From sequence record NC_019408.1: a DNA stretch of 64,000 bases; one strand, 5' to 3'. The notes under the pieces were generated by a model. The model had not been told where the DNA came from, made no database searches, and saw only the letters and a program-made list of their open reading frames with translations. The position numbers and the translations under genes were made by a program. Shown here one piece after another: positions 3,001 through 41,551 of the stretch (positions within the stretch are counted from its first letter, which is position 1; each line of letters begins with the position of its first letter).

Positions 3001-4564
3001 CCCCGGCGCGCCGGGCATGATGCCGGGCGCCCAGGGTCCGATGGGTCCGATGTCGACGGCTGTCCAGCCGGGCATGACCCCGATGCAGGGCCTCGCCGCC
3101 CAGGGCATCAACAGCGCTGTGCAGGGCGTGGGCTCGCTGATCGGCGGCGATCCTACCCAGCACACCGGCGCGCGCAGCTTCGGCCAGCGCGTCGGCGGCA
3201 TCCTGTCGAGCGTCGGCAGCATGTTCGGCTTCGGCGGCAATCGCGGCACGGCGATCGCGCCGGGCGGCCTGGGCGCCATCGGTCAAACCAAGACCTCGGG
3301 TGGCCTGCTCGGTGTCCTGGGTGCGATGAACGGCGTCACCGGTCTCCAGAAGACCTCGACCATGGTCGGCGGCACCTCGGCGGCCGGCGGCTCGACGGCG
3401 ATCTCCGACGCCCTGACCATGGGCGGCGATCTGTCGCGTAATGCCGGCATGACCAACGCCATGCAGATCGGCAGCGCCACCATCTCGATCGGCAACGCCA
3501 CGATCAATGGAGGCGGCGCGGGTGGCGGCGGTGGAGCCCCTGGCGGCGCGCCGGGCGCCGGCGGCATGGGCGCGATGGGTGGCGGCGGCCTGGGCGGTCT
3601 GCTGGGCAACCTCAACACCAGCACCGTGGGCGTCGGCGACAACATGCTGAGCCAGTTCACCATGGACGGCTCGGGCGGCCCCGGCTTCATGCCGGCCGGC
3701 TCGGGCCTGATGAACCTGTTCGGCGGCGGCGACGGCGGCTTTGGCGGCGGCGCGGACCTGTCGGGCCTGACCAACAACGCCGTGGGCCTGCCTGACATGC
3801 TGAGCGCCTTCACCATGGACGGTTCGGGCGGTCCGGGCTTCCAGGCGGCGGGCTCGGCGCTGCAAGGCCTCAACATCACGCCGTTCGGCGGTGGCGGCGG
3901 CCTGGGCGGCTTCTTCTCGGCGATCGGTCCGATGATGCAGGGCGCGATGAGCTTTGCCGGCCCGCTGATTGGCGCCCTGATGACCGGCGGCAAGAAGCGC
4001 AACAACGCGCCCGACACCTACCGCACGCCCAACGGTGTCTTCGGACAGGCCAGCCAGAACACCGTCACCGGTCGCCTGCTGGGTCCGCGCAAGAACGTCT
4101 TCGGCGAGATCGCCAACCTCGCCATGCAGTTCTTCACCGGCGGCATGGGCGGCGGCGGCCCGATGAGCATGATGAGCATGTTCGGCGGTGGCGGCGGCAT
4201 GGGTGGCTTCCCCGGCTTCAAGGAAGGCGGCTACACCAACGCGCCGGTCAACCACTACTCGACCGCGTCGCTGTTCTCGGGCGCGCCGCATTACGCCGAA
4301 GGCACGCCCAACACCAGCCTCGCCAATGGGGGCATGCCCGCGATCGTCCACCCGGACGAAGCGGTCATCCCGCTGTCGCGCGGCCGGAACATCCCGGTCG
4401 AACTGAACGGCGCCGGCGGCGGCCACTCCACGACGGTGATCTCGCCGATCACGGTCTACGCCAACGACGCCGACAGCTTCCGCCCGGCCCAGGCTCAGAT
4501 CGCCCGCAAGCAGAACAAGACCCTGCGCCGGGCGGCTCTGCGCAACGCCACCATGGCGGCCTAA
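2..4564 (+). CDS. Tail tape measure protein, 5'-truncated by the window, with an internal TIGR02594/CHAP-like peptidoglycan hydrolase domain and a Gly-rich C-terminal region
   Basis: The frame is open from position 2. The protein is long and Ala/Gly-rich. Hydrolase motifs WCAAFV, KGDIVV, GHVGF and LGGNQG lie at ~1260-1600. The C-terminal F.EGGYT...AIVHPDEAVIPL is typical of siphophage tape measures, and the gene lies directly upstream of tail-tip genes. Confidence 0.85.
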   Translation, partial: KSGAVNTAASLATDRMAMATNRSRDAVMGGTFVGSAAAPAVRQAPAFSQLSYLTGAPTEAARGRATFGQRQPFTGNSTFDARPAARGNMLGGLMGAASAGAATAATTAFSGLRKVINLLPGVALTAAVALAIFGNSMTKLNDKAVSYNNIAAGALGTAGDQVGMGLTGLFNGIRGLLGAQQKAAGTGDWLVDISASLIVFGKTIFTLASTLGKILGTMMSNIIIPWIDLGQKLSSGDLKGAAAASGEILLGQFGKESRKRWGDLGKELGQDWGKALDYAGTRKSIVDGALKSAAGDTAATQGANAAQKMTEAALAQMKAADDQALAAADLKDATANFKKDLAPLNFNDLFKRAQALADGTFQRTAAASKPGSALMAPSPAQTQANAAAVKATIASMGDRVYATAGQHMGQTAAKDGASLQAYFKANGVTIDPKKLSWCAAFVNAVLAQNGLSGTGSLAASSFKDYGSEVSRADAKKGDIVVLKPQDKLKRTTGHVGFLDGFNSDGSVRLLGGNQGGGVKVSNFKADQVVSFRRTGTGGASGADPSFLGGAIKDGQGEEGGSRYERRMNAFKALGTITGQSSPAADALSDYQGNLEKLRDIIVSEEKLMTDVGSDGQSFFNKTNLEALAATQKKWNRSIVEALNPIAKEARLLSEGNDVLELRAKGLSQEADWQERLTNMRNDGLNVDLMQDEAKWTQYLNELKKQGLEIDVKALMMKPDELRYQQGRQEALQTELDLTKALNDAKQAQIARTGSSYDRTLSGLIAGKGKEGESLTQTQDRLAGSVGPNGRNALEALQETAGVMESSRLADAKASMQSQLQIMRESARLNNTQRGVYEEYRNILGELLNKQGASLKELLDSADEQTKQLAQSFVKAKQDFENPPGFQKWADALEPLDKRLQDIKSQFMDDLGGGITDALLGEDVDWREMLHNTFKKQLRAQVDEGLKNVTYWLTGQDPNAQAAAKTPEAQALVSAADVQKQAGDTLQQAANSLLQVAQGGVPGAPGMMPGAQGPMGPMSTAVQPGMTPMQGLAAQGINSAVQGVGSLIGGDPTQHTGARSFGQRVGGILSSVGSMFGFGGNRGTAIAPGGLGAIGQTKTSGGLLGVLGAMNGVTGLQKTSTMVGGTSAAGGSTAISDALTMGGDLSRNAGMTNAMQIGSATISIGNATINGGGAGGGGGAPGGAPGAGGMGAMGGGGLGGLLGNLNTSTVGVGDNMLSQFTMDGSGGPGFMPAGSGLMNLFGGGDGGFGGGADLSGLTNNAVGLPDMLSAFTMDGSGGPGFQAAGSALQGLNITPFGGGGGLGGFFSAIGPMMQGAMSFAGPLIGALMTGGKKRNNAPDTYRTPNGVFGQASQNTVTGRLLGPRKNVFGEIANLAMQFFTGGMGGGGPMSMMSMFGGGGGMGGFPGFKEGGYTNAPVNHYSTASLFSGAPHYAEGTPNTSLANGGMPAIVHPDEAVIPLSRGRNIPVELNGAGGGHSTTVISPITVYANDADSFRPAQAQIARKQNKTLRRAALRNATMAA
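3642..3841 (+). repeat. Internal direct repeat in the tape measure gene, two ~47-nt copies encoding MLS.FTMDGSGGPGF
   Basis: 3642-3688 and 3795-3841 match at DNA and protein level. Confidence 0.8.
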
Positions 4565-37023: not shown

Positions 37024-38724
37024 TTACAGGTGCCAGCGCGAGCCGGTGAAGGTGATCAGCGCGCGCTTGCCGTTCGGGTATTGCACGCAGTGGGTGTGCG
37101 CCCAGGACGAGGGACCCTTGTTGTAGCCCATGTCGAGCAGGGAGGTCGTCCCGGTGTTGTAGGCGCTCTCGTAGATGCCCGGCGAATGGGTGTGACCGAA
37201 CGTCACCTTCGGCCCCAGTTCGGCGAACTGCTTGATGTTGCCGCGCGAGCCGTTGGTCCCGTTGTGGCCGTGGACCGAGTGCTCGACCTTGCCCTTCATG
37301 TGGGATTGGTCCTGGAAGAGGAACTTGACCCCCTCGCAGGCCCAGGCCGTGAACTTGTTCTGCATGACCCAGGAGAAGATCGAGAACCCGCTCTCGCGCT
37401 CGCGGATCGAGCGGTACTTGCGCGCCTGACATTCCAGGAAGAACTCGGCGTTGACCGGGTCCTGGCGGTAGTCGGCCGTCTTCAGCCACTTCTCCAGCGC
37501 CAGATCGTGATTGCTCTCGACCACCGCGATCTCGGTGTCGGGGTGCTCGGCCGCCAGGACCGACATGAACATCGCCACCTCGCGAAGCTCTTCCTCGACG
37601 CTCTCGGTCCCGTTGATGTAGAGCCAGTAGCGGTCGTGGGGGTCGGAGATGTTGTGGTGGTTGCGCGCCCGGAAGTCCGAGACGTCGTGCAGGAACACGT
37701 TCTCGGGCCGCAGGACGTCGATCATGCTGGGCGTCGCCTGCTTGACCCAGACGCGGCCGTTCGCCGAGCGCTGCTCGGTGGGGAAGAACCCGAACGTGCC
37801 GGCCGAGACTTGAGGGTCGATCTGGGCGACGTGGATGTCGCCCGGCGTCAGGGCGGTGATCCGGTGGGCCTCGGTGACCTTGCCGTCCTGGACGAAGCGG
37901 TCCAGGTCGTAGAACGAGCCGTCCTTGTCGCCCAGCAGGTGGCGGCAGAAGAACGTGCCGTCCTCGTCGATCTCGACCAGGACAGCCCCGAGTTGGTGGT
38001 GGTGCTGGGCCTTCTGGCCCGCCAGCTTGGGAATGTAGTTCGGCTTGGTGACGGCGCCGGTCGTCATGTTCTGCTTGGACGGCTGGTCCTTCATCGTCGC
38101 GATGCTGGCCAGTTGGACCTTGGCGTGCGGGAAGATGCCCCAGCGCTCACCCGAGTAGGTCTTCAGGCCCGAGATCGGGTTGACGTTGGTCGGCAGGGCG
38201 TTGATGTTGCCCAGGAACTCGACGCGGTCGCCCAGTTGGACGCGATCGACGATCAGGTAGTCCATGACGCGCTCGTGGTAGACCGAGGCGTGCTTGGCGT
38301 GATCCTCGAACAGGCGCTTGGAGTAGGTGAAGCCGGCGATCATGATGTCGCACGGCGCGTCCTGGCGCAGGTACTCGGCGTAGGCCTCCAGGTTGTCCAC
38401 GAACTCGTCATGGACGTAGGTGGCGTCCTGGGCCGACGACAGGATGAAGCGCCGGCGCCCGGTGTCGGGGCCGACCGGGATGACCCGCGCTTCCGGGATC
38501 GGGCGGTGCGAGAACGGGTCCTTGCGCATCGCGTAGAGGCGATTTTGCAGGGTCGTGCGCTTGACGCTGTACTTGCGGGAGAACGCCCGCTGGCCGCCGG
38601 CCTTCTTGACCATCGCCAGCAGTTCGATCGGCTCGACCGAGTAGATGTCGAAGGGACCGTCCTTGGGCAGGGTCACCTTCATCCGCTTGGCGGCCTTGGA
38701 GGCGTGTTCGAACTCAGCCGGCAT
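37024..38724 (-). CDS. Calcineurin-like metallophosphoesterase-fold protein with N-terminal HTH-like segment
   Basis: PGDIH, FLHD, ESNHD, HGH and FGHTH metal-ligand motifs. Confidence 0.7.
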   Translation of the reverse strand: MPAEFEHASKAAKRMKVTLPKDGPFDIYSVEPIELLAMVKKAGGQRAFSRKYSVKRTTLQNRLYAMRKDPFSHRPIPEARVIPVGPDTGRRRFILSSAQDATYVHDEFVDNLEAYAEYLRQDAPCDIMIAGFTYSKRLFEDHAKHASVYHERVMDYLIVDRVQLGDRVEFLGNINALPTNVNPISGLKTYSGERWGIFPHAKVQLASIATMKDQPSKQNMTTGAVTKPNYIPKLAGQKAQHHHQLGAVLVEIDEDGTFFCRHLLGDKDGSFYDLDRFVQDGKVTEAHRITALTPGDIHVAQIDPQVSAGTFGFFPTEQRSANGRVWVKQATPSMIDVLRPENVFLHDVSDFRARNHHNISDPHDRYWLYINGTESVEEELREVAMFMSVLAAEHPDTEIAVVESNHDLALEKWLKTADYRQDPVNAEFFLECQARKYRSIRERESGFSIFSWVMQNKFTAWACEGVKFLFQDQSHMKGKVEHSVHGHNGTNGSRGNIKQFAELGPKVTFGHTHSPGIYESAYNTGTTSLLDMGYNKGPSSWAHTHCVQYPNGKRALITFTGSRWHL

Positions 38725-39397
38725 AGAGAAGCTCCGGTTTGGCGCTGACGGGCTTGGACCAGTCCCAGACGAACCACGCGTAGGCGAAGCGCGGTGCGCC
38801 CTTGGTCCCCTCGATCCAGCGGGGGCGATGGCGAAGGGTGACCTTCGCGGCGAAGGCGGGGTGATCGAAGAGGTCGGCGCGCGAGCGCGCGGCGTCCCAT
38901 TCGTGGCGGCAGAGGAAGGCGACGAAGCCCTTGTCGGCTTCCATCAGCTTCAGGGCATGACGGGCGGCGCGCTCGGCGTCCTTGCCGTAAGGCGGATTGG
39001 AGATGATGGCGTCCGGGCGCGCCGGCAGCGGGGTGACCTTGCGCTCCTTGCCCTCGTCGTCGAGGACCACCGCCGGCCGGGCCTTCAGCGCGCCCAGGCG
39101 ATCCAGGTCGTCCGGGGTGAGCTTGAAGAAGTCCTCGACCGCGTCCACGTCGAAGCCTTCGTAGCGACGGATGTCCGTGGAAAGGACCTCCTGCACGTAG
39201 GGCCGCAGCGGGTTGGCGATCGCGCCGTTGCCCGCGAAGGGCTCCCAGGCATAGAAGCCGGCGAACTCGTCGCCCATGGCCTCGATCAGCGCGTCGAACG
39301 CGGGACGAGGCGTCGGATAGAAATCCAAGGGGTTCCTGGCATAGCCCGAGGCGCCCAGCATGGAGGGGTCTTTGCGACCGGCATCGGAGAGAGACAT
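38714..39397 (-). CDS. Small amino (N6-adenine or N4-cytosine) DNA methyltransferase
   Basis: DFYPTP, WEPFAGNGAI (motif I), STDI and ISNPPY (motif IV). Confidence 0.75.
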   Translation of the reverse strand: MSLSDAGRKDPSMLGASGYARNPLDFYPTPRPAFDALIEAMGDEFAGFYAWEPFAGNGAIANPLRPYVQEVLSTDIRRYEGFDVDAVEDFFKLTPDDLDRLGALKARPAVVLDDEGKERKVTPLPARPDAIISNPPYGKDAERAARHALKLMEADKGFVAFLCRHEWDAARSRADLFDHPAFAAKVTLRHRPRWIEGTKGAPRFAYAWFVWDWSKPVSAKPELLYAG

Positions 39398-39405
39398 GGC
39401 CAGGA

Positions 39406-39474
39406 GGGATGTCATGGTTAACGAAGGGTGTCAAGATTCACGACATTGACTGTCGTGACGCACCACGCTACACA
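39406..39474. promoter_or_regulatory. Back-to-back divergent promoters sharing the 17-bp motif
   Basis: Minus strand: TTGACA, 17-nt spacer containing TTAACCAT, CATCCC. Plus strand: TTGACT 39446-39451, 17-nt spacer, TACACA 39469-39474. Motif at 39429-39445. Confidence 0.7.
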
Positions 39475-39480
39475 CCCTCG

Positions 39481-40133
39481 ACGAGGCGGTCTCCTGCTCC
39501 TAGCGCGCGCTCTCCAGCCTTTCCGAGGGCGATGCGCCGGACCTGCTGAGCAAGGGAATCCAGAGCGAGGCAGCGCTCTGCTCCCCAAAGAGTGGGCCAA
39601 GCGGTGCGGGCGGAAAGGCTCGGGGTCCGTGGCTCCATGCAATGCGCAGGAGAGACCGTGCTCCTTCTGACGCAGCGGGCGCCCGACGTTGCGGGTCGTG
39701 AGGCGAGGCCGGCCGAGATGATCAACGGCCTGGGGCGGGAGGGGCTTGACCTCTCCCGCATCCGCCTCTAGCGTCACCATCAATCAGGCGCAGCACTGCC
39801 TCACGATCGGACCATGTTCGGCTCCCGGTCCTGGAGCTTGGAAGCCTCACTCTGGAGCAGGACTGCCGCTGCGCCGGGGACGGTTTGGACGACGCACCCG
39901 TCCATGAGGCGAACGCCGGCCAAGACATGGCACGAGGCGTGACGGGGACCAGAGGTCCCACTCCATTCGCCGCGCCGGCGGCAGCAAAGCTCATTGAGCG
40001 GATGGTGGCACGGGCGCGAGCCCGATTTTGAGAGCCAGCGGAGAGCCACCTTCCTCCCTGGCCCGGCGACGACGAAAGCTGGGTGGCTGTAACCGCTCGT
40101 CTGAGGGATGCGTCCCCAAGATCATCAAGACGC
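39481..40133 (+). ncRNA. Candidate large ornate ncRNA (~650 nt), GOLLD/ROOL-class by size and context; family unverified
   Basis: Promoter immediately upstream, terminator downstream, no credible ORF. More than 10 helices of 6-10 bp, including crossing pairs. Confidence 0.7.
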
Positions 40134-40164
40134 AAAAGGCCCCGATCTCGCGATCGGGGCCTTT
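40134..40164. terminator. Bidirectional intrinsic terminator
   Basis: AAAAGGCCCCGATC-TCGC-GATCGGGGCCTTT between convergent RNA genes. Confidence 0.85.
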
Positions 40165-40171
40165 CAAATTC

Positions 40172-40260
40172 TGGAGCTACGGGAGGGACTCGAACCCTCA
40201 TAGGTGTCGCCACCAGCAGAGATTTGCAGTCCCGCGCCTAACCTCTCGGACCACCGTAGC
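40172..40260 (-). tRNA. tRNA-Cys(GCA) with a long variable arm, CCA encoded
   Basis: Acceptor GCTACGG/CCGTAGC, anticodon loop CT-GCA-AA, T arm GAGGG-TTCGAGT-CCCTC, U73, 18-nt variable region with GGTG-GCGA-CACC. Confidence 0.85.
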
Positions 40261-40440
40261 AAAACGGGACTGACGCCCGAAGGCCCAGCCCCGTTCCCGA
40301 CGACCCAAGGGAGTGCCGTAGCTGTCCCAAGGAGCACCGTGACGGCGTGGCAGGCGACTGAAGCCGTCAAGTCGAAGGGCTTCCGGCGCCGGTCACCCTA
40401 ACCTCCGGGCTCTTGCGAGCGCGAGTGAGGTCCTCCTACG
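40261..40440 (-). ncRNA. Structured ~180-nt leader or ncRNA co-transcribed with tRNA-Cys
   Basis: Minus-strand promoter TTGCGG, 17-nt spacer, TATAAG (-10 at 40452-40447). Hairpins with GCAA and UUCG tetraloops. Confidence 0.4.
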
Positions 40441-40542
40441 CCGATCCTTATAGCCGAGCCTTCACGCGTCCGCAACGAAAAATGTGTCGTGAGCGATGAC
40501 TTTTTCCTTGACACCTTCGATTAGGCTCTGGTAGAGAACAGG

Positions 40543-40945
40543 CATCGTTGTAATTCGGACAACGGAAACGGCGGCAAGACGGGGGTGCGATTCCCCCCGC
40601 CTCCACCACCACGAGCCCCTGGCGCTGGGAGTACGCGACTCCTGGGCAGGGAGTGTTACCCTGGCGGACCATTGCTGGCCCGAGCCAAAGGTAGCCGGGG
40701 GTTCTTGATGCTGGGGGCGATCAGCTTCGATTGGCGCATGTGACTGGAAGACGCAACGGTGGGTGACCTCCAGGCCAGCTTGCTGGTGATCGGGTCGAAG
40801 CAACAGAAATGTCGCTGCAAATGACAACGCTCCGTTCGCGGTGCGTGAAGCCATCGCCGCCTAATAAGCGGTAGAGGCGTGTCCCGGCGGACGCGCGTGT
40901 CACAAAAAGGCCCTGCATCTACGGACCGGGGCCAGTCCGCCACCC
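40543..40945 (+). ncRNA. ssrA: Two-piece (circularly permuted) tmRNA; tag peptide ANDNAPFAVREAIAA
   Basis: Acceptor piece has T arm GGGGG-TGCGATT-CCCCC and CGCCTCC-ACCA (40598-40608). Coding piece starts GGGGGCG (40713) and gives a G3:U70 pair. Tag reading frame 40817-40861 is followed by TAA TAA. Promoter TTGACA at 40508. End points are approximate. Confidence 0.92.
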
Positions 40946-41046: not shown

Positions 41047-41125
41047 CGCGGGGTAGAGGAGTCCGGTTGTCCTCGTCTGGCTCATAACCAGAAGATCAGG
41101 GGTTCAAATCCCCTTCCCGCTCCCA
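41047..41125 (+). tRNA. tRNA-Met(CAU), initiator-like, CCA encoded
   Basis: CGCGGG start with a mismatched first pair, A11:U24, anticodon arm TCTGG-CTCATAA-CCAGA, TTCAAAT loop. Confidence 0.8.
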
Positions 41126-41383
41126 GGACCTGAACGCCGAGGGACTCCCAAAGAACGACGGCGTGACACGCTCGGAGAGAACGAGCACTGCAATCCGGGC
41201 TATGAGACCGTGATGTAGCGGACGCCGAAGCGAGAGCAGGCGTGACACCTGGAGAGACGGGACCAGTTTTCCAGGCCGCATGCCCGGCGCACAAGACCGC
41301 AGGCTTCGGCCGTAGGGCAGTGTCAGGGGATGAGGCTAGTCCCCGGCCCAAGGGCTAGGGCATGCGGCTTGGAAAGCTGGTTT
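41126..41383 (+). ncRNA. Candidate ~255-nt pseudoknotted ncRNA between two tRNAs
   Basis: 24-bp helix 41262-41285/41358-41381, duplicated ACGCC..GGCGTGACAC..GGAGAGA module, crossing pair GCACTGC/GCAGTGT. Confidence 0.6.
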
Positions 41384-41470
41384 GGTACGGTGGCTCGACA
41401 GGTAAGGCATCGGCCTCATAAGCCGAGGGACTAGCTCCCGATCCTGGTTCAAATCCAGGTCGTACCTCCA
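41384..41470 (+). tRNA. tRNA with CAU anticodon (Met or Ile2) and a long variable arm, CCA encoded
   Basis: Acceptor GGTACGG/TCGTACC, anticodon arm TCGGC-CTCATAA-GCCGA, variable arm GGGA-CTAGC-TCCC, T arm CCTGG-TTCAAAT-CCAGG, U73. Confidence 0.85.
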
Positions 41471-41511: not shown

Positions 41512-41551
41512 TGTCGTGAATCTTGACACTCCGGGTTGAGCTAGGCATTAT
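41512..41551 (+). promoter_or_regulatory. 17-bp motif plus promoter of the cadherin-repeat gene
   Basis: TGTCGTGAATCTTGACA 41512-41528, 17-nt spacer, CATTAT. Confidence 0.7.

Follow-up and report, generated by a model that had tools for sequence, protein, structure and literature searches.

Does the ~2.1 kb without credible genes in the genome of Caulobacter phage CcrRogue encode one large ornate RNA, or several small ones? The window examined here, the whole stretch of 64,000 nucleotides (nt) taken from record NC_019408.1, is 100% identical to CcrRogue (JX100814), a window position being the record position minus 62,000, and the gene-free interval contains an RNA region on the plus strand (39481-40164). 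A first-pass annotation had described this region as a single pseudoknotted RNA of ~650 nt, belonging to the GOLLD/ROOL class or to a new one. With modest confidence we favour a different reading, in which the region is a short tandem array of small structured phage RNAs that share an end module and represent a new family. The array has the appearance of two or three small RNAs placed one after another, not of one giant molecule of the GOLLD/ROOL type.

This reading is carried by a repeated module of ~60 nt, the consensus of which runs c-UGA-s-G-n-GA, a helix P2 (ACGCC...GGCGU) enclosing GGCCGAGA...rCGAC.A, then GACG, and a helix P3 of 5-6 bp with the loop (C)AGAG. Identity over a 58-nt core (39905-39962) is still 84-92% in CcrPW and in Brevundimonas phages in which nothing else aligns with the region. 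Covariance model R1, built from 14 module copies and yielding rough E-values, returned 32 matches at E<1e-10 in 15 loci, relatives having been examined as partial loci; all of these are located in Dolichocephalovirinae phages or phage-like contigs and all are on the plus strand, as are 43 of the 44 matches obtained in total. P3 covaries heavily and P2 shifts in step in divergent copies (ACGUC/GACGU, AAGCC/GGCUU). The module helices are paired in 97.4% of alignment cells, whereas shuffles reach 76.3%. Their covariation score is 0.479, shuffles giving 0.128 and slid controls no more than 0.103. The alignment behind these values and the pair counts below had been fitted to the model, a procedure that favours P2 and P3; the pseudoknot pair was outside the model. 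That pair emerged from a mutual-information scan, which joined the variable base of the 5' junction to the second base of the P2 loop (N8-N18); it is CG in 31 of 40 sequences, GC in five, and AU, GU, UG or another combination in one each. The covarying pair is flanked by an invariant G-C, and together with P2 these two base pairs form a small H-type pseudoknot. G.U combinations exceed A.C combinations in the module helices by 16 to 2, therefore the RNA is read from the plus strand.

Additional pairings were noted within the module. Only some of the copies contain an inner GCC/GGC helix within the P2 loop, in competition with the pseudoknot pair, and RNAalifold suggested pairing of GCGCAGCA with UGAsGCG, in which both sides are invariant and the partner is absent from the other unit types. 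Resemblance to a hammerhead core was rejected, as GAA precedes the helix rather than following it. A K-turn (tandem G.A beside P2), a 5S rRNA or sarcin-ricin motif, a class II tRNA D-arm formed by GGCCGAGA..GGC and GGACUGC as a mimic of the anticodon loop of tRNA-Cys were all dropped, since each either failed to fit the consensus or did not rise above chance. When 1 kb was scanned with permissive filters, models of self-cleaving ribozymes (hammerhead, twister, twister-sister, pistol, hatchet, HDV-like) gave no match at E<=10.

In CcrRogue three paralogous copies of the module stand at the 3' ends of successive segments, which are laid out as follows.

39481..39761, plus strand: unit A, a multi-helix domain containing a hairpin (39561-80) with the invariant loop-flank CGAGGCAGCG, and a degenerate module at its end.
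39697..39761, plus strand: module copy A, degenerate; UGAGGCG, P2 AGGCC (39706-10)/GGCCU (39727-31) with the loop GGCCGAGA, P3 at 39735-59.
~39781..39961, plus strand: unit B, with the invariant 5' motif GCGCAGCAC, a hairpin displaying GGACUGCC, a hairpin at 39886-39904 and the canonical module.
39903..39961, plus strand: canonical module; UGAGGCGA, P2 ACGCC (39913-17)/GGCGU (39936-40), GACG, P3 GGGAC (39945-49)/GUCCC (39955-59) with the loop CAGAG.
39962..40164, plus strand: part C, with a GNRA hairpin CGGGC-GCGA-GCCCG (40012-25) followed by AUUUU, a hairpin GCCAG (40035-39)/CUGGC (40059-63) and a terminal variant of the module.
40100..40163, plus strand: module copy C, the terminal variant; CUGAGGGAU, P2 GCGUC (40110-14)/GACGC (40129-33) with the loop CCCAAGAU, AAAA, and the terminator as P3.

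The canonical module conforms to the family (R1 73.7 bits, E 1.8e-19), with pseudoknot pairs G39909-C39920 and C39910-G39919. Copy A, which was excluded from the training of R1, is the third-best match to that model (16.7 bits, E 0.004 in 128 kb, plus strand), its pseudoknot pairs being G39703-C39713 and C39704-G39712. Copy C, excluded from the training of a further model, R2, scores 13.8 bits with it (E 0.33 in 128 kb), and by visual inspection its pseudoknot triplet covaries, being GGG/CCC in Rogue, GGU/ACC in Swift and GGC/GCC in BL57, with one mismatch in Magneto. Structure is also retained outside the modules. In the RNAalifold consensus of six phages 88% of unit A is paired, compared with 40-49% in slid controls, and 28 of its 69 pairs are compensatory, compared with 16.1 +/- 2.4 in shuffles; the corresponding counts are 18 of 50 pairs in unit B and 13 of 42 in part C, the latter also containing the invariant motifs UUU.GAGAGCCA and CCUGG.C.GGC.ACGA. 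Unit B has orthologs in CcrPW, a viral contig, Marchewka and Kabachok, and is located directly before tRNA-Cys in CcrPW and the viral contig.

Signals for initiation and termination were observed at both ends of the region and also within it.

39446..39474, plus strand: promoter PA; -35 TTGACT (39446-51), 17-nt spacer, -10 TACACA (39469-74), predicted +1 near 39481.
39746..39774, plus strand: internal promoter PB; -35 TTGACC (39746-51), 17-nt spacer, -10 TAGCGT (39769-74), predicted +1 near 39781.
40134..40164, both strands: bidirectional intrinsic terminator; AAAA, GGCCCCGATC (40138-47), TCGC, GATCGGGGCC (40152-61), TTTC.

The -35/-10 pair from which the first-pass annotation had derived a start at ~39481 was found, within or bordering a 55-nt block (39404-39458) that shows no variation among eight phages while the flanks are only ~70% identical. 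The T and A of the PA -10 are invariant in these phages, and the -35 sits within the palindrome TCACGACA-TTGAC-TGTCGTGA; a simple consensus promoter scan missed PA, its -10 matching at only 3 of 6 positions. PB has its -35 in the loop of hairpin 39735-59, where 8 of 8 phages read TTGAC or TTGAT, and in the PB -10 (TAGCGT, TAAGCT, TATCAT) the T, A and final T are invariant. Invariance of the hexamer positions while the spacer diverges suggests that PB is a promoter, and both PA and PB are predicted to be conserved sigma70-type promoters. The terminator proposed at 40134-40164 was confirmed, its conserved G+C-rich 10-bp stem (40138-47/40152-61) being 98.8% paired across the eight phages and followed by a U-tract, UUUC on the plus strand (UUUUC in Shapiroviruses) and UUUUG on the minus strand, as in intrinsic terminators; a strict terminator scan omitted it, the tail containing fewer than five U. 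It also ends the convergent tRNA-Cys gene and is annotated in Karma as a minus-strand terminator after tRNA-Cys. The presence of PB and of three paralogous 3' modules points to concatenated smaller units, at variance with one unit of ~650 nt.

The region (39481-40164, plus strand) is non-coding and the annotated gene gp125 is spurious. G+C content at the three codon positions of minus-strand gp125 (39722-40135) is flat, 0.64/0.73/0.62, compared with 0.58-0.69/0.40-0.51/0.89-0.95 in the flanking genes and 0.60/0.40/0.95 in one neighbouring gene. Between Rogue and BL10, which is 93% identical, 5 of 6 insertions or deletions are not multiples of three, and substitutions over the region are evenly spread across the three codon phases. 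No open reading frame (ORF) is common to the relatives, ORF extents and frames varying by phage, and the BL10 and BL57 records carry no ORF annotation over the region. Apart from a patch of 10 residues, encoded opposite the module and equal to the reverse translation of this conserved RNA, BLASTP shows no relationship among the proteins predicted for Rogue, phiCbK and Swift, and a Pfam scan detected no domain in the annotated gp125-region protein. The minus-strand ORF is labelled 'DNA transfer protein' in BL64 and RBC8. These findings agree with the earlier statement that no credible ORF is present and correct the database annotation, as the 'hypothetical protein' and 'DNA transfer protein' ORFs recorded here are almost certainly not genes.

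The fold of the region was compared with dinucleotide shuffles, giving z-scores of -5.35 on the plus strand and -3.10 on the minus strand, so that the plus strand folds better than its shuffled controls. The eleven helices listed in the first-pass annotation, and the terminator, are all present at the positions given there and complementary in the Rogue sequence, GCGGGAGGGG/CCTCTCCCGC containing one G.U. Scored on a MAFFT alignment of eight phages, on which the pairing percentages depend, about half of these helices are kept in the relatives and the other half are broken. Hairpins H3 (39561-80) and H4 (39735-59) are 93% and 94% paired, respectively, both with compensatory changes, while TGGACG/CGTCCA, GGGACC/GGTCCC and CGGACC/GGTCCG are 85%, 90% and 85% paired; by position, the kept hairpins also include 39886-39904 and 39945-59. 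In contrast, the helix thought to close the 5' domain (39483-89/39762-68) is only 61% paired, TCTCCTGC/GCAGGAGA 52%, GCCTTTCC/GGAAAGGC 67%, GAGCGG/CCGCTC 52% and AGCCACC/GGTGGCT 48%, all being broken outside Rogue and BL10, and GGCGCAGC/GCTGCGCC is 66% paired and loses 2 of its 8 pairs even in BL10. The closing helix and the five other long-range helices are therefore at 48-67% pairing, with mostly unpaired cells outside Rogue and BL10. The pseudoknot proposed earlier has one arm among the broken helices (39517/39612) and the other among those kept (CGGACC/GGTCCG). Because the long-range helices and the 39517/39612 arm break in relatives, neither that specific pseudoknot nor a single ornate architecture is supported. 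The pseudoknot that does exist is another one, local and contained within the repeated module. Conservation among relatives extends to a promoter-to-terminator structured RNA locus on the plus strand, beside phage tRNAs.

Arrays of the module are a recurrent feature of these relatives, with 3-4 copies in CcrPW and Colossus, three in Marchewka and Kabachok, two in Gurke and seven in an IMG/VR contig. In the giant phages each unit is bounded by a -35/-10 promoter and is ~170-300 nt long. What follows the module was counted by eye for 24 copies outside the ~220-kb phages, the CcrPW and Colossus orthologs being counted apart: the TTGAC of a promoter with 17-nt spacing lies within 10 nt downstream of 11 copies, a tRNA within 9 nt of four, and a ribosome-binding site (RBS) and ATG come next after three. 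The gap between the end of unit B and tRNA-Cys is 1-5 nt in CcrPW, Colossus and the viral contig, and in the terminal units of Gurke, Marchewka, Bajun and Rogue P3 is replaced by a true terminator preceded by A-rich sequence. Small ORFs with a good RBS are found inside arrays of CcrPW (L010 1232-1825, plus strand) and the viral contig (L018 1423-1593, ~1864-2127 and 3132-3440, plus strand). Some array ORFs start 15-40 nt past a module and one resembles a winged-helix protein; a Pfam scan of the CcrPW array ORF (gp171) detected no domain.

The distribution of the module is narrow. It was detected in 38 phage records, all from Dolichocephalovirinae of Caulobacter or Brevundimonas, in one IMG/VR contig and in one metagenome contig, and was not found in a plasmid search. 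A degenerate-pattern scan gave no true match in 185,579 species genomes; over species genomes and metagenomes it flagged 55 loci, of which only L063 is real, the others lacking P3 and arising by chance in G+C-rich DNA. A search of the available literature found no description of the CcrRogue RNA or of the module. The module is an RNA family new to Rfam, of a familiar general kind, the structured RNAs of phage tRNA islands.

The surroundings of the region are those of such an island. The gene-free interval of ~2.1 kb is bordered by a DNA methylase gene and a T5 A1-like gene (minus strand) on the left and by gp126 (plus strand) on the right, and holds the following elements.

40172-40260, minus strand: tRNA-Cys, 89 nt, 8 nt past the terminator.
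40546-40864, plus strand: permuted two-piece transfer-messenger RNA (tmRNA), 88 bits.
41047-41125, plus strand: tRNA-Met, 79 nt.
41384-41470, plus strand: tRNA-Met, 87 nt.
41124-41188, plus strand: module-like element between the tRNA-Met genes, R1 8.8 bits, R2 15.6 bits.
41212-41263, plus strand: second module-like element between the tRNA-Met genes, R1 16.9 bits, R2 32.4 bits.

The R2 scores of the last two elements are partly circular; equivalents of both (41124..41263) occur in CcrPW, Colossus, BL10, Karma and the viral contig. The tmRNA and both tRNA-Met genes are within 1.3 kb of the RNA region, a position beside phage tRNA genes like that of GOLLD, and the order methylase, RNA region, tRNA-Cys, tmRNA, tRNA-Met is kept across Caulobacter and Brevundimonas Dolichocephalovirinae. 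The CcrRogue tmRNA is circularly permuted, of the alphaproteobacterial type, and conserved throughout the subfamily, tag peptides predicted by ARAGORN ending in AA in relatives. All three tRNAs are unusually long, and tRNA-Cys scores only 35.8 bits, with an apparent long extra arm and a class II-like D-arm. The start of the methylase gene (38714-39415, minus strand) differs between identical genomes, being at 39328 in CcrRogue and at 39415 in BL64, and the longer version would place the start codon within the spacer of a predicted minus-strand promoter. The 16-mer GTCGTGAATCTTGACA, an extended -35 element, is found 14 times in the 64-kb window, compared with 0.47 expected, at 39429-39444 (minus strand), 41513-41528 (plus strand) and 12 other sites, and presumably represents a phage-specific promoter class. 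One copy is predicted to drive the methylase/A1 operon, divergent from the RNA promoter, and the TCACGAC half of this copy forms the palindrome around the -35 of the RNA promoter.

Comparison with curated RNA families supports the novelty of the locus. A cmscan of 39300-40300 against all 4,227 Rfam 15 families at E<=10 returned nothing but tRNA-Cys and terminator-like and chance-level small-RNA fragments; the locus belongs to no curated family, which fits the first-pass alternative of a new class and not its suggestion of GOLLD/ROOL membership. The GOLLD model (RF02032, gathering score 150 bits) gives no match with E<=10 in this interval and, at the gathering score, none anywhere in the window. 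As a positive control, the model scores 165-171 bits in Karma, Swift, phiCbK and BL57 and, below the cut-off, 104 bits in Brevundimonas phage Bajun, the copies in the relatives being located as follows.

L003 2561-3047, minus strand: GOLLD, adjoining tRNA-Cys.
L006 2058-2544, minus strand: GOLLD, adjoining tRNA-Cys.
L008 2060-2546, minus strand: GOLLD, adjoining tRNA-Cys.
L009 2265-2751, minus strand: GOLLD, adjoining tRNA-Cys.
L023 3712-4130, minus strand: GOLLD, adjoining tRNA-Cys.

These copies lie on the other side of tRNA-Cys, at a distance of a few hundred bases, and contain an embedded tRNA, tRNA-Lys or tRNA-Gly according to ARAGORN or GenBank. Rogue and BL10 lack the GOLLD segment, only 285 nt separating tRNA-Cys from the tmRNA (window 40261-40545). 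GOLLD is a neighbour in the relatives, distinct from the candidate RNA, and blastn detected no similarity between the candidate and the 5' half of Karma GOLLD. Both are phage-borne, long, ORF-free structured RNAs of a tRNA/tmRNA island, but the candidate lacks a model match, occupies the other strand and another position, has no embedded tRNA and consists of repeated promoter-bounded units. At the predicted 5' end of Karma GOLLD (L003 3379-3421, minus strand), just past a TTGACG-17-TAGAAC promoter, is a module-like CUGACGAA-AGCCCC-GGCGAC-GGGGU-GACA-hairpin, which scores 18 bits with R1 as the sole minus-strand match and is a possible link between the module and GOLLD.

Other known systems resemble the locus in part. 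ROOL is a large structured RNA often found in phages and prophages near tRNAs and is similar to the candidate in both respects, but the candidate has no model match, no Rfam 15 family, presumably including ROOL, having matched the region at E<=10. Species 1 and 2 of the T4 tRNA cluster (rnaC/rnaD) are stable RNAs of unknown function, the ends of which are made together with tRNA ends; as small phage RNAs amid tRNA genes they offer an analogy, although the units described here have their own predicted promoters and a shared pseudoknot module. The inter-cistronic RNase III hairpins of phage T7 may be compared as a repeated conserved structure between units and a possible protective 3' hairpin, but the module helices, at 5 bp, are too short for RNase III, and the module has a pseudoknot and invariant single-stranded bases. 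Bacterial Y RNA (YrlA, RF02553) comprises modular small RNAs beside a Ro60 gene, an arrangement paralleled in the Brevundimonas giants, in which a Ro60 ortholog (TROVE + vWA) is immediately upstream of the array on the same strand (L011 130-1500, L012 131-1501, L022 1083-2468, L024 1085-2470). In contrast to YrlA, the modules have no model match and no tRNA-like domain, and most module-carrying phages lack Ro60; the Y RNA models (RF02553, RF00019) gave no match in 39300-40300. A tblastn search with phage Ro60 was positive in CcrPW, Colossus and the Brevundimonas giants and detected none in the ~220-kb phages, for which a link to Ro60 and Y RNA was rejected; in CcrPW and Colossus the Ro60 gene is ~25 kb from the array. 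In Marchewka a weak YrlA-like match (L022 410-522, 32.6 bits, E 0.002) is located upstream of the Ro60 gene.

In the tandem array that we favour, host RNA polymerase would transcribe rightward from PA (+1 near 39481) to produce unit A and from PB (+1 near 39781) to produce unit B with its extension C. Transcripts would end or be trimmed just after P3, or would continue to the bidirectional terminator (40138-61), and read-through from PA would generate the ~684-nt species as pictured earlier. Each unit would consist of a lineage-specific folded body joined to the shared end module, with the terminator acting as P3 of the last unit. The module may provide a common end-forming and stabilising structure that punctuates the island and sets each RNA apart from the promoter, tRNA or ORF that follows, while the invariant pseudoknot pocket could be a handle for one host or phage factor and the variable bodies could carry specificity. 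Several points weigh against this arrangement. Transcript ends, promoter use and processing are predictions from the sequence. P3 of the internal modules lacks a proper U-tract, which makes end formation by termination doubtful. Part C shows no recognisable promoter of its own and therefore probably extends unit B in the 3' direction. Taken alone, module copies A (16.7 bits) and C (13.8 bits) are weak matches that conform only weakly to the family, the body alignments draw on 3-5 independent lineages, and the pseudoknot comprises only two base pairs, one of which never varies. Furthermore, three modules are directly before ORFs and one module-like element is at the 5' end of Karma GOLLD; therefore, the description of the module as strictly a 3' handle may be wrong. 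A broader proposal, put forward tentatively and with low confidence, is that the module is a compact pseudoknot recognised by a host or phage factor or a ligand and controls RNA fate island-wide, as a conditional terminator, processing switch or exonuclease-resistant cap, and that the arrays of up to seven units are effector RNAs, for example decoys or sponges against host RNA-targeting defences or RNA-metabolism proteins, operating alongside GOLLD, tmRNA, tRNAs and Ro60/Y RNA.

Alternatively, the whole PA-to-terminator transcript of ~684 nt could be one ornate GOLLD/ROOL-like RNA, in which the modules are internal domains and PB is incidental. A single strong, conserved promoter marks the 5' boundary and a single strong terminator the 3' boundary, with no U-tract terminator after unit A or the canonical module, hence read-through is likely; part C is without its own promoter, the entire sequence folds well (z -5.35), and a conserved long-range helix closes unit A, with a partner other than the one first proposed. 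We nevertheless consider a single molecule unlikely. The proposed inter-domain and long-range helices are not conserved, the conservation pattern of PB is exactly that of a -35/-10 pair, the homologous units in the giants are separate promoter-bounded genes of ~170-300 nt, CcrPW and the viral contig have unit B but lack A and C, and the GOLLD and ROOL models do not match. Conversely, the module alone might be functional, as a cis-acting punctuation or regulatory element (an attenuator, RNase processing signal or exonuclease block) for the flanking tRNAs, tmRNA and small ORFs, the bodies being mere spacers or leaders. This reading appears doubtful to a similar degree. It would account for modules that abut tRNAs (1-9 nt), promoters and RBS-ATG starts and also occur between two tRNA-Met genes, and for sequence conservation that is much higher in the module than in the bodies; the compact pseudoknot with invariant junction bases may also be compared with small aptamers, and we take it to resemble the preQ1, SAM-II and guanidine-III folds. 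Across genera, however, units A and B keep covarying helices and the invariant single-stranded motifs GCGCAGCAC, GGACUGCC and CGAGGCAGCG in their bodies, no alternative pairing of the expression-platform type was seen, no riboswitch or ribozyme family of Rfam 15 matched, and the Rogue array cannot be a tRNA-Cys leader because it converges on tRNA-Cys.

The remaining explanations have far lower probability. That the units are Ro60-associated Y-RNA-like RNAs, with the module as a Ro60 binding or tethering element like YrlA beside rsr, is very improbable. The Ro60 gene adjoins the array upstream on the same strand in the Brevundimonas giants, and Ro60-bearing giants carry more module copies, but Rogue, phiCbK and other ~220-kb phages have the module without a Ro60 homolog, the CcrPW Ro60 gene is ~25 kb distant, and the YrlA and Y_RNA models match no module, the YrlA-like match being separate, weak and upstream of the Ro60 gene. 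Still harder to sustain is the view that only DNA-level elements are present (operators, an origin, packaging or recombination sites) and no functional RNA. The palindrome around the PA -35, the over-represented GTCGTGAATCTTGACA with one copy at 39429-44 (minus strand) and the occurrence of TGACG twice in the module are consistent with it; for the module it is contradicted by covarying helices that keep pairing, with G.U combinations that are valid on one strand only (16 vs 2), and all copies run in the direction of the tmRNA and tRNA-Met genes. Least probable of all is that the region encodes a protein, the minus-strand gp125 or the 'hypothetical protein' and 'DNA transfer protein' (BL64, RBC8) of the database. 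GenBank records do annotate minus-strand ORFs, and an open frame of ~207 codons exists in phiCbK and Karma, but the flat G+C by codon position, varying ORFs, frame-breaking insertions and deletions, unrelated products and lack of a Pfam domain described above contradict coding.

Phage tRNA islands repeatedly yield large or abundant structured RNAs of unknown role (GOLLD, ROOL, T4 stable RNAs). The CcrRogue locus adds a family outside Rfam, a small, sharply defined pseudoknot module that is supported by covariation and has many natural variants. The host system, Caulobacter crescentus with phiCbK-type phages, is genetically tractable, and the small size of the module suits it to direct structure probing, pull-downs and crystallography. 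The arrays adjoin GOLLD, a two-piece tmRNA and, in the giants, Ro60 and a Y-like RNA, and therefore the module's partner could reveal the role of the island during infection.

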